From the sequence record NC_042081.1: a stretch of DNA of 64,000 bases; one strand, 5' to 3'. The notes beneath the pieces were generated by a model that worked only from the letters and a program-made list of their open reading frames with translations, was not told the DNA's origin and did no database searches. Positions 2,034-53,362 of the stretch are shown piece by piece. The translations under genes and the position numbers were made by a program. Within the stretch, counting starts at the first letter, position 1. Each line of letters begins with the position of its first letter.

Positions 2034-3677
2034 TTATTCTGCTTGGAATTTAGTGTTAATTACACTATTATAAAGTCCAGTTGCAGTATTTGCGTAACGC
2101 ATTGCTTCACGAATAATGGAGTCATGTTTAGGTGCACTATCTGTAATAATAGATGCTACCTTACGTGATACTTCTTCGATCTGTTCTTTAGAAACATCGT
2201 CGATTTTATCACTCTCTAGTTTCCGTGAAAGTTGATCAACATCATCTTCAAGTTGCTTAATGGCTTTAACAATGTTCCGTCCGCCAGTGATAACATTAGC
2301 TGCATCATCAACCAGATTACGTAGAGCTACTGCTTCTTTCTTAGCTTGACTCTTATCAAAGTTCTTTAAAGTCACTTCAGCGCCAGGTTCTGCGGCTGTC
2401 TCATCATCCGTTAGATATACTTGAGTAGCAGTCGTAGTTACAAGCTTATTACCCGGTAAAGTGTTAGATGTACTAGCGTAGTGTTTGAGAGGCCCATCTT
2501 GAAGTTTGTCCATCTTCTCAACTAGTTCGCTAGCATCATTACGCTCTGGATCCCAAGCTTTAAGCACAGTGCCAATATTCGTTAGGTAGGTAGCATAGTC
2601 TTTTGCATATACAGATGCCATCCATTTAACAATAGGGCCATATCCAACGTTAGCTGAAGGCTGAATGAATTTACCATTAGCAAATACGGGTCCACCATTT
2701 TTAACAGGAACCGTTAATTCACTGGGTATATTTTCAAACTTAGCATTTTGGATAGCTAAAATGAGTTCATCAACTTTTACGCTCACACGCGGTACACTAT
2801 TCTTAAGACTATCCCATACGTGGCTAATAATTTCACGTAGTTTAGCAATAGCTTTCTTGATATAAGCAAGCGCCTTACGACTTAACTCTTTAATATCCTC
2901 AGTTGAAATCTTAACTGGATATAAATGACTTTTACCACCAGTCGTATAGTTTTCTAATGAGCTAGTTAAAGTATTATCACCAAGTACATGACGATGTGGT
3001 AAGAGTGCAGAATGAATAAATGCAGCTGTACTTTGACTGATACCATTAATACCAGCTTGTCGAACAAGAGCTTTAATCGACTCTAGGGCATATGCGGTAT
3101 TTAGACCTTGATTAATATCTTGCACTGCTGTAGTAACTACTTGTGCATTACCAATGTCCATGAAATCAGTAGGTTTATCCATATCCACTGCAACAGCGAT
3201 CTGTGGCACCACGCCATTATGCGCTAGTGGAATAGAACTATCTTTGGCAGCCTGATCAGCGATTTGCTGAGTTACTGTTTCACCACCTTGTGGTTCCTCT
3301 CCTTCGGCACCTGCTGGAATAACTGTTTCAACAGCAATATTAGGTTGTTCAGGAATAGGGGGTACTTCTGTTACTACATCTGTTTCAACTACGGTAACTG
3401 GTACAGCTGGTTGTTCAACTAGAGTAGCAGCTGGAGTCTCAACAATAACGCCATTATTAGGAGTATTAACAATAGTGGTATCTGCATCCACTGGTGCAGT
3501 TGGTGTTACACCAACATTATTGTCAGTCACATCTTGAATAGTATTTTCAGGTACAGCGTCTTCAGAAATACAATCGCCACTAGTCATGGCTGCTACTTTA
3601 TCAACTGCTGTTTCAGGAATAGGTACCTCAGTATAGTCTTCTAGACTATCTAGATACTCATTGAGTTTAAATGTCAT
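2034..3677 (-). CDS. Inner head protein, phiKZ gp95-like (internal-head-protein paralog family)
   Basis: 547 aa. Acidic propeptide, then a block shared with gp93/94 (LE..AG..GISQ.AAF.H..SLENY..ISTEDIKE). Confidence 0.8.
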   Translation of the reverse strand: MTFKLNEYLDSLEDYTEVPIPETAVDKVAAMTSGDCISEDAVPENTIQDVTDNNVGVTPTAPVDADTTIVNTPNNGVIVETPAATLVEQPAVPVTVVETDVVTEVPPIPEQPNIAVETVIPAGAEGEEPQGGETVTQQIADQAAKDSSIPLAHNGVVPQIAVAVDMDKPTDFMDIGNAQVVTTAVQDINQGLNTAYALESIKALVRQAGINGISQSTAAFIHSALLPHRHVLGDNTLTSSLENYTTGGKSHLYPVKISTEDIKELSRKALAYIKKAIAKLREIISHVWDSLKNSVPRVSVKVDELILAIQNAKFENIPSELTVPVKNGGPVFANGKFIQPSANVGYGPIVKWMASVYAKDYATYLTNIGTVLKAWDPERNDASELVEKMDKLQDGPLKHYASTSNTLPGNKLVTTTATQVYLTDDETAAEPGAEVTLKNFDKSQAKKEAVALRNLVDDAANVITGGRNIVKAIKQLEDDVDQLSRKLESDKIDDVSKEQIEEVSRKVASIITDSAPKHDSIIREAMRYANTATGLYNSVINTKFQAE

Positions 3678-3764: not shown

Positions 3765-5297
3765 TTATTGGCCATATCTTTCTAATTCCATATTACAAAC
3801 AGCATTTCGTTGCTTTGCAATACGTAATAGGTAACTAATTAGTGTTGCGTATTCTGGTGACATATCGGTAATAAAGCCATTAACTAAAGATATAATCTCA
3901 TTTGCATCATCACGAGCACCTTTCCAAATAGCTTTAGACCTACGTAGCTCCATGTCCTCAATGCCCTGTGCAACCTTCTTCAGTTGTTCAAGGACATCTT
4001 TTTCAGCTTTAAATAGATCACCTAAACGACGAATAGCTTCTTTATTAACTTCTAATGTTTTACGCACTTCAACAGGCGGCCTTGGCTCGATCGTGATTGT
4101 ATCTGGACCATCACCATGTTTATCTTCACCAAGTCGTGGAGCATATTTATCTTTCTGGAATATAAGTTTACTATTACCAGGTAGAGAAGTATCTTTTACT
4201 TTATCTAACTGATTAGCTTCACCAATAAATTCAAAAGCCTCTTTAAACTTATCTAGTTCATTATCTTCTAAGTCGTAGTCTTTAATTAATTTAACTACTT
4301 TATCAATGTTTGATCTAGCTATATTTGGCCATTCTTTAGCTAGAAATTGACTAACTTTTGTTTCATTAGTTAAATCGTCTAAAACAAATTCATCACCAAT
4401 GAATAACATTTTAGGATTGTCAATTTTAATTGACATATCAAAATCAGGTGTTACCCTTTCATTTGATACAGTTGGCTTATTGATTAAACTTTTCGCTTTT
4501 TCAATTAACTCATCAGTTTTATCTTCAACTGATTTGATTCCAGTTAGTACACGCTGTGCCGCTACTTTAGCTTGTTCAATAACATGGACTATTAAAGCAA
4601 GTATCTTTTTACCTATACTTTCAATACGTTCTTTTATTTCTTCTTGAGAAATATTTACAAAACGCATAGCGCTGCTAGGGGTTGCATTAAAATCTTCAAT
4701 ACTAATCTTTTCAAAGCCGATAAGCTTATCAATTGATTCTAATGTAACGTGCATAAAAGCAGCTGATTGTTTAGTAATACCTCTATCACCAGCGGTATTT
4801 AATAAATCTATAAAACATTCTAAACTAGTACGCGCATGCAGTAATTGATTTAGCTGATATGTCATGTTTTGAGATGGAGGTGTATCATACGCAAAGATAT
4901 TTAAATGGTCATCATCACTATCTAAATCTTTACCATCCACTGGCGTAGGTCTATTATCAGGACTTTCTCGGGTATCATGGGGTGATGCTGGATATTCTTC
5001 TGATGCGACGTATGTTTTACCAAATGAATCAACTTCAGTAACTAAACCACGATCTGATTTCCAATGGATATTAGGTTTATGTGCTTCTTCAACATCTAAC
5101 CCATTATTAGTTGCTTTTACATCATTTGGTAATTCATCAATTAACTTGGCAGCTTCTTCTGGTTCTTTAGATATTTGCTTGTCATCTATAGCAGCATGCT
5201 TTAGTTTGGCTTTCGCGACTTTTTCTTTTACTTCAATAGTACCGTAAGCTTCTAAGCTATCAAGTAATTTATTTAAGTTCATTTTACAATCCCTCAA
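3765..5297 (-). CDS. Inner head protein, phiKZ gp94-like (true start probably 5282, MNLNK)
   Basis: Paralog block TSLE..AGDRGITKQSAAFMHVTLES..ISQEEIKE. Confidence 0.8.
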   Translation of the reverse strand: MRDCKMNLNKLLDSLEAYGTIEVKEKVAKAKLKHAAIDDKQISKEPEEAAKLIDELPNDVKATNNGLDVEEAHKPNIHWKSDRGLVTEVDSFGKTYVASEEYPASPHDTRESPDNRPTPVDGKDLDSDDDHLNIFAYDTPPSQNMTYQLNQLLHARTSLECFIDLLNTAGDRGITKQSAAFMHVTLESIDKLIGFEKISIEDFNATPSSAMRFVNISQEEIKERIESIGKKILALIVHVIEQAKVAAQRVLTGIKSVEDKTDELIEKAKSLINKPTVSNERVTPDFDMSIKIDNPKMLFIGDEFVLDDLTNETKVSQFLAKEWPNIARSNIDKVVKLIKDYDLEDNELDKFKEAFEFIGEANQLDKVKDTSLPGNSKLIFQKDKYAPRLGEDKHGDGPDTITIEPRPPVEVRKTLEVNKEAIRRLGDLFKAEKDVLEQLKKVAQGIEDMELRRSKAIWKGARDDANEIISLVNGFITDMSPEYATLISYLLRIAKQRNAVCNMELERYGQ

Positions 5298-7988: not shown

Positions 7989-8534
7989 TCAGTCCTTATC
8001 TATTACTTCTACAGATCCAAATAGTAGATGTAGGGTATACATTAGATCATTCATACCGTTTTTGTGTTTAACCCAATTCTGGATCATTGAAACAGTATTT
8101 AGATCTAATTTTAACTCATTAAAGAGAGTAGCAATTTCAGCGCGCGGTTCAATGAGTTGTGCACCAGCATCTGGTTCAGTAGCTAGTAACATTGGCCATT
8201 GGGTAATTGAAATACGTCGATGACCCGTAGCAATGTATCGAACAGTATCTAATAGGAATTGATAATTATAACTATCGATATTACTATTATTGTCCTGTAG
8301 AATAAACCAATTATAGTTTCCGCTAAAAAGACGGATAGCACAAGCTAGGACTTTCTTATGGAATTCCCAATATGCCGTTTGTGCAGGAAAGTTGGTAAAG
8401 ATAAGATATAGTTCTTCAACTTGAGGATCACCGGGACGAGCAGTGAACCGTGAAATGGCCTGTTGTTGACCACCTGAGTAATTACGACCAAATGGGCGTA
8501 CAGCATTAGTTGCTGGCATATCAATGCCCTCCAT
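7989..8534 (-). CDS. Virion-associated protein, phiKZ gp91-like (start may be 8519)
   Basis: 181-aa ORF tightly coupled to its neighbours in the structural operon. Confidence 0.6.
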   Translation of the reverse strand: MEGIDMPATNAVRPFGRNYSGGQQQAISRFTARPGDPQVEELYLIFTNFPAQTAYWEFHKKVLACAIRLFSGNYNWFILQDNNSNIDSYNYQFLLDTVRYIATGHRRISITQWPMLLATEPDAGAQLIEPRAEIATLFNELKLDLNTVSMIQNWVKHKNGMNDLMYTLHLLFGSVEVIDKD

Positions 8535-10673: not shown

Positions 10674-14645
<3,972 letters not shown>

Positions 14646-33038: not shown

Positions 33039-35448
33039 TCAATGATCAGGGGCATATTCTAATGCAATACCACTACATTCAAGCAGGTGATCAAACATAG
33101 CTACTGGACGAGATCCACCAAATGGGATCTTTTCACGATCAACTGCAACTGGCACAGATGAAGGTTTTTCTGCTGTTAGCCAAGACTCAATAACCGCAGC
33201 ATGCGCCAATGGGTTATTAGTTTGGTCTAAGATTTCAGCAGTCGGACCTGGACCAACTGTACAGTTATATGACCGAGTTTCAGATTCACCGAATGACCGG
33301 ATAGCTGTTTCTCGACCAGGAGTGCTAGCCCTATCAGCGTTGTTTAACTTAGAAGGTAGACCAAATGGTTGTGTTTTTACAGATGCTGCTGCTGACCAGT
33401 CTTCACCAATCTTTTCTAGTAGCATCATGTAAAGTGGACCCATTAAGACATTGTCTTTAGTTGTTACCCACTTACCAGCTTGATCTCGATAAGATACCTT
33501 TCCATAGTGTGGTCGATATTTATCGCTATTAATTAATTTGTTGACTGCTGCCATTAGATCCACTGGATCATCAACTGGTGCGTAGATATATGGGAATCCA
33601 TCCATTAGTACTGTTTTAACATGTTCTGCTGGATTTGGGTGTTCCATCATTTTACTATGCATTGTTGGAGCAATGATCTCATAGAAACCTAATAGTTCTT
33701 TAAATGCATAATCAACCCATTGTGTGTTACCCATTACACTATTTAGTTGTTGCTGGGTTGGTTTGGCATGTCGATCTAGTCCAGCTTCAACGCGTAGGCG
33801 TTGAGCTAGATCCCGTGCAGCTGCACCAAAACCATGTTCATAAATTCGACCATAGTTTGAACGACGCATGGTTGAACCACCAAAGATAATTAGATCTGCC
33901 CTATTACCATTTTCGTCAATAGGCATATCTTCATCTTCCATTACCTTACAGATGACGCCCTTCGTTATGTTCAGGTAAGTTCGCTACGCTTACCCCGCCT
34001 CTCGTATTGCAGGCAGCTGCATGTCACCATGCAGACCAGACTATATCTTAACCTTCACCCTAGGTGGTCAGGTCCCTCCCATTTCCACTCGCTTGAGTGT
34101 ACTCCGCGTAACCGGATAGTCGTTGAACGTTCAATCCATTTCTGGAAAGCTTCGCTGCTGATTGTCTCATTGAGATGTCCCAGCAATTAGAGAGGATTTA
34201 CTTGACTCTTTCGAGATCAAGCAGGCAATTTGACAATATCCATTCCTGAGAGATGGATGGATATTAATTACCACCATGAAAATCAGTCATCTTGAAAGCA
34301 CCAGCAGGCATCTTTTGGGCTTTGTAAGTTACTTCGACTCGCCATTCATCTAGTGGGTCTAGTCGATAGAATCGAGATAGTTTACGGACATTATCAGGTT
34401 GAGGTAGGAACATCTGTGCAGTTACAATAAGACGTTCAAATTCCTCAGTGATGTGTAGATCATCTTTACGACGTGCTAATAGACCACGATAGATCTTTAA
34501 TAGTTCTCGATAATAACTGCTAAGATGAGTATGATATTTAACTAGTTGTGCATCCATTCCTGTTGGGGTAGGTGATGGATTTACACGCTCATCACGCCAG
34601 ATATCAATATCAATAACCTTTGCACCAGGCGTGCCAATAACAGCTCTGTCGAAAGTCCTATCTAGTGTACGAAGTGCCCTAGGAGTCATCTCGGCAGGAG
34701 CTAGATCATCATCATGGTCACGGATGGCGAAGATTACACCATCTGGTCGGATAACATCACCAATGTCTGGAAATGGTTTATAGATCTTATCATCGCCATA
34801 CATGTTTAAGAAGAAAGCTTTCCTACCAGCATTAGCTACAGCCGTGCTATAACTAGTTGGCATCATTCGTTTAAGGAAATTCTTATTAGCTACGAATCCA
34901 TCTTCAATGGTACCTGCGGCAGATAGGAATACAACATTAGCATTAACACCCATCCCTAAAGTACCATCTTTCTTAACTGCACCAGACTGTGCAATTACTG
35001 TGTCTTTAGAGAACATTTCATTTGGAGCAATGGTTTCCCACACTTCTCGGTTCTTTACAAGTTCATAACCAAAGTCTTGGTGATGGCTCATGTATTCGGG
35101 AACATGTAAGACACCAATGGTTTTATATTTGTCAAAATAGTTTTCGTAGATAATAGTTGTTACCGGGTTAGATCTAATACTGTCTTTACCAATACCCGTT
35201 GGATATTTTCTAAGAACGTGTAGTACACGACAATCCTCAGGAAAACGAACATCATGTGTATACTTGGCATACTCTAATTCAGCACCCGTTAGGAAATAAC
35301 GCGATTCATTTCCATTTACTTCCGGTGCTTGTCCAATGTGTGTTACAAACATAGCACCCCGTGCAGATGAGGTAGTGCCATACCAAGGATCTAAACCAGT
35401 ATGTCCTAATAGGGTTAGATCAATTTCACGTTTACCTAGCTCAGCCAT
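33039..35448 (-). CDS. rpoB: Non-virion RNA polymerase beta-like C-terminal subunit, phiKZ gp71-73-like; spliced join(35448..34267,33962..33039), about 701 aa
   Basis: Splicing restores the beta motif TDFHGGN|KGVICKV. Also NANVVFL..GTIEDG, GPLYMMLLEK and FGESE motifs. Confidence 0.92.
33963..34266 (-). mobile_element. Group I intron (304 nt, no ORF) in the nvRNAP beta gene
   Basis: Exon ends in U and intron ends in G. P AATTGCTGGGA, Q AATCAGCAGC, R GTTCAACGACTA, S AAGATATAGTCT; reading frame restored. Confidence 0.92.
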
Positions 35449-47464: not shown

Positions 47465-47848
47465 TTAATAAATTTGCTTATCAAAAGAGCAATTAATTGG
47501 GATAGTGATAACTTCATTAGTAACTACATGTTTGCCTGTCTTTTTAAAGAATTGGGCAAATTTTGAAGTAGCTGGAATTACAAAGGTATCATCCCGATCA
47601 TTATTTGACATATTGTACAGAGTAAATTTACCGTCTAAATCAAACCTAATTTGCCATTCAATATCACGTACTTTGAAATCTATACCAAACCTTAAGTGAT
47701 CATCAATTAATTCAGAACCACCGTACTCATAAGCTCCGGTGAAATTCCAATTAATTTCTGCGAATTGGAAAGTTACAGGATGTTCGCCATGTTCATCTTG
47801 TATGTAGTAACCATCATGAGCTTTCCAATAGATGACTAAATCATGCAT
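47465..47848 (-). CDS. Hypothetical protein
   Basis: 127 aa, SD GAGG. Confidence 0.6.
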   Translation of the reverse strand: MHDLVIYWKAHDGYYIQDEHGEHPVTFQFAEINWNFTGAYEYGGSELIDDHLRFGIDFKVRDIEWQIRFDLDGKFTLYNMSNNDRDDTFVIPATSKFAQFFKKTGKHVVTNEVITIPINCSFDKQIY

Positions 47849-47868
47849 GCTACCAGCCTCAAAGAAAT

Positions 47869-47893
47869 AATAGGGGAGTCTAACTCCCCTATT
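47869..47893 (-). terminator. Terminator after the nvRNAP beta' gene
   Basis: AATAGGGGAGT-CTA-ACTCCCCTATT. Confidence 0.8.
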
Positions 47894-47896
47894 AAT

Positions 47897-50800
47897 TTAT
47901 TTTGCTTTTAGCCATTCTTCTAATGGCGGTAAATACTTCTCATGTGCCCAGTTAATAATTGTTTCTACAACAGGACCCTGTAATTCAAGGTTACCTGAGA
48001 TTTCATGTGGTTCATCAATAGATAGAACCCATGTATGTGGTGCAATGCGTTCAGTTGCTTTAGTTAGATACACATCAGGCATTAACGTAAGATTCAATTG
48101 ATCGCCGTCAAAGTCAGCCGTATTGTTCAGTATCAGTCGTTAATTGATACCCGCACCATTACGTGCAGCTCTAGCTTTCACTAGAAGACCAGACTATATC
48201 TTCACCCTTCCTTTCGGAGTGGGGTGTCTCCCATTTCGAGTCACTTGACCCTACATCCTATTTCTAGGACCGGTGCACCTGATACCGTAATAGTCGTTGA
48301 ACCTTCTCCTATTCCTAAATGGAATGTTACGGAGCTTGGCTGCTGATTGGCCCTACCTAATCTTTTTCAAACCTTGGCTTTGTCTTTCGACTCGCAGTGG
48401 TAGATTAGTTTAACAGGATATCCCAGCAATTAGAGAGAACTCACCCCAATGATTACTCACTGGGGGAACTAGACTTGATTAACTTAATAAGGTATTTATC
48501 AAGCACTTCATATTCAATTTTAAATGAAGCCGGATCAAAGACGGACACTACTCCGTTTTGTTCCATTGTTTTTACCCTTATTTAGTTATTCAATTGTCCA
48601 TTAGGCGCTTTCAAGCATAATACTGACATGCTGATAGAATTATCATTAATGTCATCTTTTACTTTGGTAATAAAGAACTGCTGTGTGGATCCACGTTGAA
48701 GCGTTGGCAATATCTTCAGTTAGTTCGTTAGGCTAACCCGCACCATTACGTGCAGCTCTAGCTCTCGCTAGACGTTGAGACTATATCTTCACCTTTGGCT
48801 TTACCCAGTAAGGTGCTTCCCACTTCGAGTCCACTTGGACCCTACGTGCCAATGCACTAGTCGTTGAACTTTATCCATACCTTTCGGGTTAGGATCTTAG
48901 CTGCTGATTGACTCTATTCAGTTATTCTTAAGCATTCATAGAACCTTTCGGAACTATTGTAGCTAACTGACCTAACGAGTTGTTCCAGCAATTCAAGAAG
49001 TTTTGTCGAGTATCATTTCTGATACAAGGAAACCCATATTAAGTTAAGTCGCTACACTAATTGCTTAGGTGGTATGTAGCTTCTCTCTACGCGCTTTGTA
49101 TCTATTGTAATCATCAATGGATTTGTTAACCATTTCTTGGGTTAGGTTAGAAACGTATTCGAATAGCCGTTCCTTATCATCGACCCTACAGATAACAACA
49201 CCGTTGAATAATCTTAGATCTGGTTTCTTTAAAATGTCCTGCACTGACCCTTTAATTAACCCGGTTCTAAGTTGTAACTGCGTTAGGTTTACATATCGTC
49301 CAAAGGTGTTGGTCTTGAAGTCTATGCAATAAACTTCAATTGCATTCTTACGCTTCTGTGGGTGATAATCCCCACTTACTTCGAATACATATTTACCTCT
49401 GAATGGTTTAACTAAATGACCCAATACGACATGTAACCCTTTATTGTGACCAAGCTCTAGGAACTCGGCTACTTCTTTCATCGAGATGAAGTTATTTACT
49501 TCACCAGTCAGAATGTTTGTACATTTAACAGCGAGTGCATGTTTATTGGCACCGGTTATAAATGCATGCTTAACATTACCGCTACGAGTTTCCCACTCTA
49601 GGTTAAGGTAATGATTATTATGCTTAATGGTATCTTTGTGGTTAACGTCCAACTCATTAAAGTTTTCAGGTAACCCATGAAACGCCATGCACACAAAACG
49701 ATGAACATAACGAATCTTTCTAATACTGTCATCATTGTGGATGTTAACGGTAAGGTAAGTACCTTTAGTTGTCTTATTCTCGTGTTGTGAGATTAATTCG
49801 CCTTTAAGGTTCCTAACTTGACCATGATCACTGACTTCGTAATTATTGAAACCAGGTATTTTACGCCATCTTATTTCTTCATTCATAATTCCTCATTAGA
49901 GATTCCTGGTTACCACACCCAGAATCTGTAGCGCTTTAACTTAATAGATTAATTTCGGTGAAAAGTACAACCCATCCCTTTATAAGGGGCTGCTTCTGCA
50001 ATTAGCTCTTTAAATAGATCTGCAATGATTTGGTTATATTGAAGTACATTCTCATATACAAATGAGAATGCTTCACGAGTTGTCATGTTAAACTTTGCTT
50101 TTAGTTTATTGGTTAGATGATACTTTAATAATTGACAACCTACCCCCCAAGGGATATGTAGTTCATCATAATCATGCGGGTCACTAATAGAAGTGATTAC
50201 TGCACGTGCCGTAGCGTTGAGACGAGCACCAAACATGTGACGCCGAGCAAGACCAGGCTTTTGAGCAATTCGTGATTTTGCGTAGATCTCGTAGAACTGG
50301 CCATATAGTCTTAGTCCTCGCATAGTCCTATTCTGAGCTTTAATTGGACTAAGTGGTACAGATGATGCATCAATACTAGCGAAGGTTAAGGTAGCATCAA
50401 TTGCTGCTTCAATTGGTTTATCTAAGTAAGTACCAGATGTGGTTGATTCTGCTACGAAACAGAGTTTAGAAGGAACTGGTAAATATTTAGGGAATAACTT
50501 ATCTTTATTCTGAGCAACGAATTGAGCGAATTCGGATTTATTATTAGAGATAATATTTGCATCTAGTAGGAATTGGAAGATCTCATTGAAATTATCAATG
50601 AAGTGATTTAATCCTCTTTCAAATCCTCGATGCAGTAGCCTATCTACTTTCCTGCGTGTTTCTTTAGAGGCAATGGATTCTACGTCGTATCGATAAGAAG
50701 TATCGGTTAGATATGCTAAGAAATCGAATTCTTTAGTTACTAGATATCCAGTTAGCATAATGATTAAACGTGGGTTAATTAGACTACGTACATGTTTTGG

Positions 50801-51088
50801 TGTACGAACCCACATTGATGGTTCGATAGGGCGGCTAGAAGTATTGACAACTGGAGTATTACAAATATCACAGATTACTCCGAGTTTATGTGCGTCTTCG
50901 ATTGCTCGACAATCACAACTTACGCTACTTTCAATTGCTTCTGAATCTTGGAAATGAGAATAGAAATGCCTATCAAATTCTTCTTTCTCATCTGAGTTAC
51001 TCGTATTGTAATCATTGGCATAAATACGTTTACCCGTAAATTGATCATGTACTTCATCATGATCAACAACTTTGGCATAAAGACCCAT
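47897..51088 (-). CDS. rpoC: Non-virion RNAP beta'-like N-terminal subunit, phiKZ gp55(-56.1)-like; three exons join(51088..49952,48707..48600,48118..47897), 488 aa
   Basis: Splicing restores FHRN|PTLQRG and the catalytic APN|ADFDGDQ. Also an N-terminal Zn ribbon (CDC..CDIC) and RRHMFGARLN.TARAVI. Confidence 0.93.
48119..48599 (-). mobile_element. Group I intron (481 nt) splitting the NADFDGD motif; carries a 37-codon mini-ORF
   Basis: U| and G| boundaries; P/Q/R/S elements AATTGCTGGGA, AATCAGCAGC, GTTCAACGACTA, AAGATATAGTCT; GNRA-capped CCCCAGTGA-GTAA-TCATTGGGG hairpin. Confidence 0.92.
48453..48566 (-). CDS. Intron-internal mini-ORF (37 aa), possible homing-endonuclease remnant
   Basis: SD-like TAAGGGT upstream; MEQNGVVSVFDPASFKIEYEVLDKYLIKLIKSSSPSE*. 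Confidence 0.4.
   Translation of the reverse strand: MEQNGVVSVFDPASFKIEYEVLDKYLIKLIKSSSPSE
48708..49951 (-). mobile_element. Group I intron (1244 nt) carrying an HNH homing endonuclease
   Basis: P/Q/R/S elements lie after the ORF. The 5' arm TTAAGTTAAAGCGCTACA pairs with TGTAGCGACTTAACTTAA after the ORF; GTTTC pairs with exon GAAAU (U.G at the splice site). Confidence 0.93.
49065..49886 (-). CDS. NUMOD4-HNH homing endonuclease, phiKZ gp56-like
   Basis: WRKIPGFNNYEVSDHGQVRN (NUMOD4); VHRFV..F..VNHKD..KHNN..NLEW (HNH); C-terminal NUMOD1-like repeats. Confidence 0.92.
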   Translation of the reverse strand: MNEEIRWRKIPGFNNYEVSDHGQVRNLKGELISQHENKTTKGTYLTVNIHNDDSIRKIRYVHRFVCMAFHGLPENFNELDVNHKDTIKHNNHYLNLEWETRSGNVKHAFITGANKHALAVKCTNILTGEVNNFISMKEVAEFLELGHNKGLHVVLGHLVKPFRGKYVFEVSGDYHPQKRKNAIEVYCIDFKTNTFGRYVNLTQLQLRTGLIKGSVQDILKKPDLRLFNGVVICRVDDKERLFEYVSNLTQEMVNKSIDDYNRYKARREKLHTT

Positions 51089-51123
51089 ACCAAACTCCTA
51101 TTTATCGATTAACAAAAAAAGGA

Positions 51124-51156
51124 GATATAAGCGGCCCCCGAAGGAGCCGCTATATC
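51124..51156 (-). terminator. Terminator closing the chmA transcript and structured RNA
   Basis: GC-rich stem with a UUCG-containing loop on the minus strand, followed by a T-rich run. Confidence 0.75.
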
Positions 51157-51162
51157 AGTTTT

Positions 51163-51460
51163 TACAATGGACCACCAACGGAGCCTGGCCCGATCCTAGC
51201 GTCGTCTACAAAGCTTAACCTCCGCTCTTCTCTGTAGCGCTCTGGCACTAGGACCTTTTACCATCCATTGTAGTTTTGATCACACGTCACCTTTTGAGTA
51301 ACTCCTTTCGGTTAAGTGATCTATCATCCTCGTGTAGTGATAGGTCGACCTAGACTAAGTCCACTAGTCGATTACTTCACGGAACCTACTCCTAACCGTT
51401 ATCACCGAAGTGAAACAGGGTCGCAGTATTAGAATCGGGATGTTACTTATTTAACATCCC
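51163..51460 (-). ncRNA. Candidate highly structured non-coding RNA / chmA 3' UTR element of unknown family
   Basis: No ORF; at least 7 helices, including two perfect 9-bp stems; UUCG and GAAA tetraloops and a G.U pair on the minus strand. Confidence 0.6.
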
Positions 51461-51481
51461 TATCTACCGAGGTATTTCCTA

Positions 51482-53362
51482 TTAGTACCAGGTACCCGGT
51501 GCATTATAGGAAGGAGCGCCGTAAGTTTGACCCATGCTGCCAGCCATACCAACTTGTGCACTACCAGAAACAGCCATGTTACCCATACCGGTGTAACCAG
51601 CGAAGCGCTGTTGACCGAAGTTGGTAATTAGGTTTTCCATGGTTACAGTTACACCAGCTGCTGCTGCTGCGGCATCCATTGCGGTGATGAATTTCGGGTT
51701 AAAGGTTAGACGACGAGCACGACCAGTATAGGTAACGTTACCTAGGTACATCTTGTCGAAGCCTTTACTGTTATTCATACGACGCACAATGTGGTCATTA
51801 CCTACTTGAGTAGCATACCAGGTCTTCCACTCTTGATCATTACCTTCAGACATGTTCATGGCGCCTAGAACGTCAAGATCACGACGGTCGCTTAGTTCAC
51901 CATGCTCATCAGTGTAGTGACCGAGGTCTACTTCATGATGGTTGTCAAAGATAATCGGACCAGCTTCAGCTAGGTTATAGAACTGACGGAAATCAGTGCC
52001 ATATAGGTTAGTTAGAGCTTGGAAGATCAGGCTAACTGCACGAGCTTGGTTTACGCCACCAGCTGCATCTAGGACTACCTGCTCAAGAGCAGAGTTGTCA
52101 CCCATCGGATCGATATCGATCTGGAATGCAGGGTTCTGGTTAACCATCTTGTTCATTAGCATTACGAAGTTGCTATCGTCTGCCATGAATGCTTCGGTGC
52201 GAGTTTCAATCGCTTTACCTAGTTCTGAGTAATAACCAAGTGCACCAATATCACGCATCTTGCTAGTAGCAATCTTCGGCATTAGGGTACGAGCCCATGC
52301 CTGAGATGCAGTTGCACGATACGCATTACCAAGTGTGAACAGCCACATTTCTAGAGTCCATGCTTGGATCCAGGATGCCTTACGAACGTCAGTGATAACG
52401 ATGTAAGGAGTGAACTGCGGAGGTAGAACTGCACCAGGTAGAGTTACGCCAAACATACCTTGTTGCTGGCCAGTGGTCGGAGTCCAATGTAGATCTACGA
52501 ATAGACTAACTTGGTTTAGCTGGCTATCGGTATCATAGAACTCGTTCTCAGGTACGTTGGTTTTCTTACCACGGCTAGTGGAAATAACCAGGTCGGAACG
52601 AATCGGATTACCACAGCTATCTTTAACCGGAATACCATTGTAGTCTAGGTTGCAGGTAAGCTGTTCGTTTTCTGCTTTGATGTGGGTTGCAATAGAGAAC
52701 GGAGTCTCATTGTTACGACGGGCAATAGCATCTTCACAGATATTAACAGATTCAACTAGTAGGTTCTTAACAGCTAGTTCATCTTTGAAGTCGAAGTCAG
52801 CATACACTGCACGGGGACCAGCGGATAGTACTTCTAGACCAGGGATGTTGTAACGGTTCCGTAGGAACTCGCCGATCTTGCTCCAGTACTGAGCAGTGAA
52901 TACATCACGCGGTAGTACCTTCTCTTCAATGATGTCATCAGTTAGACCATTGTTGATTTTGTGGGTACGGGGACGGATGCGAGTACCAGGTAGGTTATCG
53001 AGTACTAGAGTACGAACGAATGCCTTCATGGAACCGTTGATATCTTTAGCTAGTTTAACAATGAGTAGACCAGCCATACCAACTTGTTGCGCATCGCGAT
53101 CGAAACGATGGATATCGAAGTCATCAGGTAGGTCCTGATGGCGGATTGCTTCTTCTTTTACTTTAGTGAATACTTGTAGGGCATCTGCTGAACGAGCATC
53201 AGATCCATCTAGCCGCCCAGAGCGACGCATTAGATGGTTAATGCCAGTGGTTGACCCAGGTGCGCCAGCAGGACGTTGAGCTTGACGCTGTGCAGTGGGT
53301 TGCGGAGCCGGAGCGGTTGCTTGAGTTTGAACGGTGCCGATTTCGTTTTCGTTAACAGCCAT
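51482..53362 (-). CDS. chmA: Chimallin, major phage nuclear shell protein (ChmA/PhuN), phiKZ gp54-like
   Basis: 626 aa. Q/A/P-rich N-terminal arm, [59 protein letters not shown] and GQQRF motifs match chimallin as I recall it; directly upstream of nvRNAP beta'. Confidence 0.93.

Follow-up and report, generated by a model that had tools for sequence, protein, structure and literature searches.

In nucleus-forming phages, chmA ranks as the first and most critical gene; in Pseudomonas phage SL2, 393 nt separate it from the gene that follows. What does this spacer hold, and in what form would it act? We addressed this question in a 64,000-nt stretch of the sequence record NC_042081.1 (hereafter “the window”), whose source is phage SL2, a phiKZ-type phage. 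The spacer (51089-51481) shares 100% identity with phage SL2 and 96% with positions 47,529-47,922 of phiKZ. On the minus strand, the order is chmA (gp54), the spacer and then gp55, which encodes the nvRNAP beta' subunit and starts at 51088. The chmA product is 100% identical to that of phage SL2 and 99% identical to PHIKZ054 of phiKZ, annotated as “nuclear shell protein,” and the gene is terminated by tandem stops (UAA UAG). Because alignments of ChmA to the homologues of Psa21, 201phi2-1 and Phabio, which are phages without the element described below, extend to residue 626, the spacer is not needed to complete the protein and the ORF is complete.

The initial annotation of the window placed a densely folded RNA without any ORF between the chmA stop codon and a terminator. 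We confirmed the location of the element between these two landmarks (Table 1) and found no coding potential in the spacer, as stops occur throughout all six frames in SL2, phiKZ, PA1C, phiPA3, phiHQ and HPP-Temi. In SL2, no sense frame stays open for more than 31 codons, and the indels that separate the elements of different phages are not multiples of three. Two small hypothetical proteins are annotated on the element in GenBank records, for example those of HPP-Temi, HHBS36_1, ANB1 and KEN phages (at 574-681 and 827-1015 in locus L011, at 574-681 and 826-1014 in locus L013, and in many other records). Given that all frames are filled with stops across the relatives, these small ORFs are very likely artefacts.

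Table 1. Features of the chmA-gp55 region and of the inserts found at related loci; positions are those of the window unless a locus of another phage is named.
Feature	Coordinates	Strand	Description or basis
chmA (gp54, chimallin) ORF	51482..53362	-	626 aa; stop 51482-51484; ORF list
A-rich short linker	51472..51481	-	opens with second in-frame stop UAG 51479-51481; diverged between phage groups
Domain 1, four-way junction	51329..51471	-	consensus fold
Domain 1 closing helix	CUCG 51468-51471 with CGAG 51329-51332	-	consensus fold
Domain 1 arm 1	51430-51466	-	9-bp hairpin GGGAUGUUA/UAACAUCCC
Domain 1 arm 2	51387-51428	-	UUCG-capped
Domain 1 arm 3	51337-51380	-	consensus fold
Domain 2, three-way junction	51278..51321	-	GAUCAC/GUGAUC, CC-GAAA-GG mini-hairpin, GUUAC/GUGAC hairpin
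Domain 3, long branched stem	51165..51270	-	apical GGAG loop and side hairpin; consensus fold
Intrinsic-terminator-like hairpin	51114..51156	-	8-bp GC stem, UUCG loop, AU-stem extension, then UCC and U7
gp55 Shine-Dalgarno AGGAG and ATG	51086..51099	-	sequence, ORF list, phiKZ annotation PHIKZ055
Module B, pseudoknotted RNA of ~150-300 nt	L010 (phiHQ) 1194-1498; L004 (Psa21) ~4410-4554; L021 (RP13) ~2930-3097
201phi2-1/Phabio insert	L005 (201phi2-1) 4259-4420; L006 (Phabio) 4253-4500		followed by small ORFs gp106 and gp83

The minus strand of positions 51165-51471 specifies a three-domain structured non-coding RNA of about 320 nt that is conserved and covarying. Compared with dinucleotide shuffles, the minus strand folded with a z-score of -5.5 when the terminator was included and -3.8 when it was left out, and the plus strand with -3.0. 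Scored separately, domain 1 reached -4.2 in the sense and -3.7 in the antisense orientation, and domains 2 and 3 together reached -3.7 and -1.3, respectively. An RNAalifold consensus computed from eight sequences (four phiKZ-type and four PA1C-type) contains 97 pairs in 15 helices. Standard pairs occupy 99.4% of the cells of this alignment at the predicted positions, as opposed to 30-42% when the 3′ partners are slid by one to three columns.

The fold is also supported by compensatory substitutions, in an alignment set of low diversity that amounts effectively to three lineages. In the eight-sequence alignment, eight pairs changed on both sides, a number matched by one of 500 shuffles, and the covariation score of 0.120 (0.074 for shuffles) was matched by none of the 500. 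Covariation among the chmA-gp55 spacers of relatives had been proposed as a check in the initial annotation, and in a wider alignment of 14 sequences, with six phiKZ-type genomes added, ten pairs show double-sided changes. Independent double changes occurred inside the phiKZ group at 51368/51348, 51253/51194 and 51240/51204, and in HPP-Temi at 51299/51289. Among the 14 sequences, columns are variable at about twice the rate in unpaired positions (42/137) as in paired positions (32/194). The compensatory substitutions imply that the fold is still under selection.

Read in the chmA sense, eleven of the consensus pairs are G.U, whereas the opposite strand would have C.A in their place, and we conclude that the minus (chmA) strand is the RNA strand, as first suggested by the tetraloops and wobble pairs. 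Eight of the nine helices originally proposed from the sequence are kept in the consensus. The exception is CTATCA/TGATAG (51321-26 / 51339-44), which we rejected after finding that PA1C-type phages pair only four to five of its six positions. The mutually exclusive helices, i.e., the base of arm 3 (GUGAAG/CUAUCAC) and the closing helix CUCG/CGAG, pair at 10/10 positions everywhere and include two compensatory pairs.

We considered whether the spacer could act at the level of DNA, as a promoter cluster, an origin or a protein-binding site, or could hold a small protein gene that was missed. The two small hypothetical proteins annotated in several GenBank records would agree with the latter. 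The stop-filled frames and the indels that are not multiples of three speak against a gene, no sigma-70-like promoter was found inside the element, and the eleven G.U pairs confined to one strand, together with the compensatory changes, indicate RNA. We thus regard these explanations as very improbable.

Within domain 1, compensatory pairs are found at 51470/51330, 51465/51431, 51453/51444, 51379/51338 and 51368/51348. The strands that join its helices are almost invariant between phiKZ and phiPA3 (e.g., GGUAGAUAGGG, CCCGAUUCUAAU, GUAGGUUCCG and CUACACG). In general, the invariant blocks common to these two phages include several unpaired junction strands, despite a ChmA identity of just 48%. 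In domain 2, the change at 51299/51289 in HPP-Temi is from A-U to G-C. The stem of domain 3 consists, in order, of CAAUGGAU/GUCCAUUG, GGUCCUAGUG/CGCUAGGAUC and CUACAGAG/CUUUGUAG, with compensatory pairs at 51269/51166, 51254/51193, 51253/51194 and 51240/51204. The RNA most likely forms a compact tertiary structure with nearly invariant junction nucleotides.

The spacer between gp53 (chmA) and gp54 of phiPA3 is homologous to that of the window and has domain 1, domain 2 and the terminator in common with it. When folded alone, domain 1 of phiPA3 forms the same four-way junction as that of SL2. Arm 1 is compensated (from UUA/UAA to UAC/GUA), and arm 2 is entirely re-sequenced, with a GAAA cap in place of UUCG. 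Arm 3 is ~165 nt long, compared to 44 nt in SL2, and it is this net insertion of ~130 nt that prevents alignment of the phiPA3 domain 1 by MAFFT or by a covariance model. The domain 2 junction is kept, with GAACCAC/GUGGUUC as its closing stem. Domain 3 of phiPA3 is poorly alignable and was not convincingly recovered by folding alone.

Does the element belong to a known class of RNA? The initial annotation had noted the lack of group I and hammerhead cores and had proposed a comparison with Rfam. We searched 50900-51700 (801 nt) with the 4227 models of Rfam 15 and found nothing near a gathering threshold (best scores 10-19 bits). No group I, hammerhead or other Rfam family matched the element at E ≤ 10, and no family matched the phiPA3, PA1C, phiHQ, Psa21, 201phi2-1, Phabio and Viktualia loci at E ≤ 1. 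The group I result carries weight because the same library recovered three true group I introns in this window, at 75.8-87.5 bits (RF00028, gathering score 50). A group I intron was rejected on three grounds: there is no RF00028 match, no ORF is interrupted, and the insert lies 3′ of the chmA stop. Neither is there sequence similarity between the element and the introns of the window. ARAGORN detected no tRNA or tmRNA in the window or the homologous loci. Complementarity of the element to the translation-initiation regions of chmA and gp55 does not exceed that of shuffled controls (z -1.8 to +1.7).

Two of the group I introns interrupt gp55 (47906-51088, minus strand), which comprises three exons (51088-49940, 48707-48588 and 48118-47906); the Rfam matches are at 48756-49051 (87.5 bits) and 48169-48490 (75.8 bits). 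An ORF at 49065-49886, within the first gp55 intron, is at the position of phiKZ gp56, an annotated HNH endonuclease. In PA1C and phiPA3, gp55 is uninterrupted (476-488 aa). The third intron is canonical (34017-34245, minus strand, 84.2 bits) and, by position, is probably in another nvRNAP subunit gene.

We searched for further copies of the element with covariance models over the window and 13 loci. The domain 2 model (R1) matched SL2, PA1C, phiHQ and phiPA3 only, at 55-73 bits, and the domain 1 model (R2) matched phiKZ-, PA1C- and phiPA3-type phages only, so both recovered the known homologues and no second copies. A weak match at 12710-12771 was dismissed, as it lies inside a 971-aa ORF, and visual inspection suggested a domain 2-like motif in Psa21 and in the 5′ part of phiHQ, which the covariance model did not confirm. 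A blastn-short comparison of all modules with the masked window returned chance words only.

By blastn, the element is present in 57 phage records, all of P. aeruginosa phages, with 95-100% identity in phiKZ-type phages and 86-87% in PA1C, PS119XW and HPP-Temi. Partial matches were detected in phiHQ (the 3′ half only) and in phiPA3 (conserved blocks only). Scans of IMG/VR, JGI metagenomes and GTDB with conserved motifs identified PA7, phiPA3 and Psa21 only, plus four chance matches inside ORFs, and the tested motifs gave no indication of a host origin, being absent from the 185,579 species genomes of GTDB. As judged from these searches, the element occurs only in P. aeruginosa chimalliviruses of the phiKZ, PA1C and phiPA3 types.

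The terminator has a wider distribution. A domain 3-to-terminator gap of 8-14 nt separates the element from the terminator stem, and 36-38 of 38 terminator positions are identical in phiKZ, PA1C and phiPA3. A simple terminator scan missed this hairpin because the U run begins 3 nt past the stem. The same type of hairpin with a U tract is found 3′ of chmA in D6, Noxifer, 201phi2-1 and Psa21, and a GC-rich hairpin and U tract, a predicted terminator, follows chmA in all seven related genera inspected. In D6 and Noxifer, only ~30 nt separate the chmA stop from the same terminator type. Thus, the ancestral feature is the terminator, to which the RNA was added by insertion. As this spacing is so short in D6 and Noxifer, and others have unrelated sequence at the site, a role essential to nucleus formation is unlikely; since the two phages lack any insert, the element is dispensable or host-specific in function.

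The insertion is mosaic. The flanking genes of PA1C resemble those of phiPA3 more than those of phiKZ (ChmA 65% vs 49%, gp55 85% vs 66-67%). For the whole spacer this is reversed, with 85-87% identity between PA1C and phiKZ and 70% between PA1C and phiPA3. Arm 1 follows the species tree (SL2/PA1C 31/44, PA1C/phiPA3 36/44), while arm 2 (SL2/PA1C 51/53) and domain 3 depart from it, and for domain 3 SL2 is closer to PA1C (107/113) than to phiKZ (102/113). Neutral spacers are saturated (6/14 and 11/24). In the 5′ half of domain 3 (51215-51277, minus strand), a cluster of nine positions, among them several compensatory changes, sets phiKZ and PA02 apart from SL2 and PA7. That SL2 is nearer to PA1C, a phage of a different genus, in this patch suggests a recombination tract. 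We read the mosaic identity as probable recombination between co-infecting P. aeruginosa jumbo phages, superimposed on structural constraint; a wholly vertical descent, in which the phiPA3 lineage evolved fast, is less probable.

The arrangement of the region raises the possibility that the element regulates gp55. A structured RNA directly upstream of a strong terminator and of gp55 has the geometry of a riboswitch or attenuator, and the element could be a cis-acting attenuator or antiterminator leader, in which the fold, with or without a ligand or protein, sets the frequency of read-through by the phage RNA polymerase into the essential nvRNAP gene (as in riboswitches, T-boxes or put-type polymerase-modifying RNAs). 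Only 25 nt lie between the terminator U tract and the gp55 start codon, which leaves no room for a separate promoter. chmA and the downstream nvRNAP cistron have been treated as co-transcribed (Gerovac et al., 2025; PMC12571901), so at least some transcripts pass the terminator. Moreover, GGCUCC in the side hairpin of domain 3 repeats the 5′ arm of the terminator and could in principle compete for the 3′ arm, and an alternative domain 1 hairpin (CUAUCA/UGAUAG) is possible. However, the GGCUCC repeat is missing from phiPA3, the alternative hairpin decays in PA1C-type phages, and no riboswitch or T-box model matched. Neither the element nor the terminator is disrupted in the minimum-free-energy fold, and read-through of the ancestral terminator takes place in D6 and Noxifer without an upstream element. 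In combination, these observations make a gp55 leader rather unlikely. The element also shares the intrinsic terminator of the mRNA, with its U tail, a feature of sRNAs derived from 3′ UTRs.

Other phages carry different sequences at the same site. In 201phi2-1 and Phabio, the chmA 3′ UTR includes another structured stretch (z -5.1 and -3.4, respectively), the first 34 nt of which are 91% identical between the two phages and include a GAAA-capped hairpin (UGGGAUC-GAAA-GGUCCCA). The insert in the Psa21 spacer is ~370 nt long and different again (z -1.6). The presence of unrelated structured inserts in 201phi2-1 and Phabio suggests that structure as such is favored at this site, and the element could simply be a passive stabilizer or insulator of the chmA mRNA, which protects it from RNase E or 3′ exonucleases or separates translation of chmA from that of the next cistron and has no specific partner. 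The element lies at the 3′ end of an mRNA that is abundant in the early and middle stages, which is compatible with this. On the other hand, single-stranded junctions conserved across phages whose ChmA proteins are 48% identical would be superfluous in a mere barrier, the terminator hairpin already shields the 3′ end, and the Psa21 insert is not unusually stable. We consider passive stabilization unlikely.

A further type of insert was revealed by phiHQ. The gp55 of this phage is 100% identical to that of PA1C, yet its domain 1 has been exchanged for ~300 nt of different sequence. The replacement shares 73% identity with the Psa21 chmA-gp55 spacer and 82% with an unannotated stretch of Ralstonia phage RP13 that ends 10 nt before a tRNA-Leu gene. 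We refer to this sequence as module B and predict that it forms a pseudoknotted RNA. As read from the sequences of the three copies, pseudoknot 1 shows a compensatory change from AGGUC/GACCU to UAGUC/GACUA, and pseudoknot 2 pairs the loop UACGGU with a downstream ACCGUA. Module B has no Rfam match, and pattern scans found no further relatives. The descriptions of RP13 that we found place it only among phages with T-modified genomes. The modules of phiHQ, Psa21 and RP13 may therefore function in contexts unrelated to chmA, with RP13 judged from its tRNA-Leu neighbourhood, and such contexts argue that the folded RNAs are autonomous and not tailored to the message of chmA.

In Psa21, an annotated minus-strand ORF of 80 aa (gp057, L004 4341-4583) overlaps module B in the chmA 3′ UTR and is probably spurious. 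Apparent repeats of the module in RP13 were rejected, since only the first 30-50 nt recur, as an intergenic motif rather than as the module. This motif of ~30-50 nt is found at 8255, 16694, 17569, 20621, 21806 and 45761 of RP13 (L025), where it precedes several transcription units, including the unit of module B and tRNA-Leu, and it is probably a promoter or terminator element.

The patchy distribution, the mosaic identity and the module swap in phiHQ are all features that might be expected of a selfish or decayed mobile RNA, such as the remnant of an intron or other ribozyme, kept by recombination between co-infecting phages without benefit to them. The adjoining gp55, with its two group I introns and HNH ORF, marks the region as prone to mobile elements. 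We nevertheless hold this origin to be decidedly improbable. The element has no group I match at E ≤ 10, where the true introns score 76-88 bits, it interrupts no ORF and it does not resemble the introns of the window. No further copies turned up in the rest of the window, in IMG/VR, in metagenomes or among GTDB genomes, and the compensatory substitutions indicate a fold that is still selected.

Evidence for expression comes from the phiPA3 counterpart. An eCLIP analysis of the phage-nucleus RNA-binding protein ChmC in phiPA3 gave high-coverage peaks in the interval from chmA (gp53) to gp54; the authors interpreted these as small regulatory RNAs (Enustun et al., 2024; PMC11077065). Both expression and ChmC cross-linking are thus documented in the literature for the counterpart in phiPA3. 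The initial annotation had proposed ChmC binding as one role of the element, beside localisation, export and shell nucleation as further candidate roles, and these peaks in the homologous spacer agree in part with the proposal of ChmC binding; according to the same paper, ChmC discriminates little among phage RNAs or sequences (PMC11077065). Given this low specificity for phage mRNAs, the peaks could stem simply from the abundance or the structure of the RNA. Unexplained ChmC eCLIP peaks in phiPA3 have been reported at one other site, the gp203-gp204 spacer (L026 25482-25610), in which a GC-rich hairpin of 14 bp precedes a second hairpin (z -3.7) and which does not resemble the chmA element. 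Two manual screens of phiKZ for ncRNAs, by Grad-seq and dRNA-seq, do not mention the region, the RNA is not listed in the texts of Gerovac (2021; PMC8545117) and Putzeys (2024; PMC10914365), and reviews up to 2026 contain no description of the element. We found no RNA family or paper that describes it, consistent with its initial designation as an undescribed ncRNA.

We tentatively favor, with somewhat less than even confidence, the explanation that the element is an accessory, transcribed, protein-binding folded RNA in the chmA 3′ UTR that probably accumulates as a 3′-UTR-derived species. This explanation builds on the position of the element, its lack of coding capacity, its covarying structure, its strand and its restricted, mosaic distribution. 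The initial view of a conserved non-coding minus-strand RNA ahead of the terminator is retained with the correction of one helix, and the modularity and mosaicism of the element, as well as the ancestral status of the terminator and not of the RNA, are additions to that view.

Under this favored explanation, an accessory RNA module would have been placed behind the chmA stop, ahead of a conserved intercistronic terminator that predates it, and would now serve as the intercistronic stretch and 3′ UTR of the chmA transcript. Transcription would start from the strong early and middle chmA promoters, and the 3′ end would be set by the terminator, or the element would be retained in chmA-gp55 read-through transcripts. 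The RNA would then fold into a compact tertiary structure with nearly invariant junctions and act as a folded, protein-binding RNA, for which ChmC is the sole partner with experimental support. It would probably accumulate as a stable species derived from the 3′ UTR; its processing, its stability and the action of the ribonucleoprotein are the conjectural parts of this scheme. The element does not appear to be an sRNA that acts by base pairing, nor an intron or a ligand-responsive switch.

A broader and unlikely scenario is that a new class of large, modular, horizontally exchanged structured RNAs uses the chmA 3′ UTR of Pseudomonas chimalliviruses as a docking site. This class would comprise the phiKZ/PA1C/phiPA3 element, module B of phiHQ, Psa21 and RP13, and the 201phi2-1/Phabio element. 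Its members would operate autonomously, as ribonucleoproteins or as catalytic RNAs, either in the biology of the phage nucleus (e.g., the handling or export of RNA in dependence on ChmC) or against host defences that target RNA.

An RNA on the chmA transcript bears on the question of how phage RNAs are handled, exported and protected, and the element is a concrete, deletable object for probing RNA-level control in phiKZ. Its accessory, mosaic and host-restricted spread resembles that of an anti-defence or fitness cassette more than that of a core part, which would be new for a jumbo-phage RNA. The element family could join Rfam, and it bears on annotation, given the many GenBank records that carry spurious small ORFs on the element.

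Several known systems resemble the element in part. Group I introns (RF00028) are likewise phage-borne, with GNRA or UUCG tetraloops and multi-way junctions, and two are present in the adjacent gp55, but the chmA element has no covariance-model match, interrupted ORF or similarity to these neighbours. Terminator-coupled leaders (riboswitches, T-boxes and the HK022 put RNA) are also folded RNAs located directly before a terminator in an operon. The chmA element differs from them in having neither a clearly conserved antiterminator alternative nor a family match, and relatives of SL2 use the same terminator leaderless.

ROOL and GOLLD are large, multi-domain ncRNAs with conserved junctions that are carried by phages, often beside tRNA genes, and we take both to be among the Rfam models. 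The chmA element is similarly multi-domain with conserved junctions, and module B of RP13 also adjoins a tRNA gene. However, the chmA element is about half their size, is located within an mRNA 3′ UTR and has no Rfam match.

The closest parallels are candidate phage ncRNAs derived from UTRs, such as 3'UTR_PHIKZ298 and 5'UTR_gp40 of phiKZ and ncRNA1 and ncRNA2 of PAK_P3 (Gerovac, 2021, PMC8545117; Putzeys, 2024, PMC10914365). Like the chmA element, these are located in mRNA UTRs, bounded by terminators and conserved within a genus. They are 70-210 nt long with simple folds, whereas the chmA element is ~320 nt long, has three multi-helix domains with conserved junctions and spans three genera. 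The ChmC-bound peaks of phiPA3 (PMC11077065) are at the same locus and in homologous sequence, and were reported as coverage peaks only, without boundaries, structure, conservation or the definition of a family. Thus, a phage ncRNA embedded in a UTR is a known kind of object, and the chmA element, which was not described before as a family, is an unusually large and complex one that occurs in three genera, is modular and is part of the chimallin transcript.
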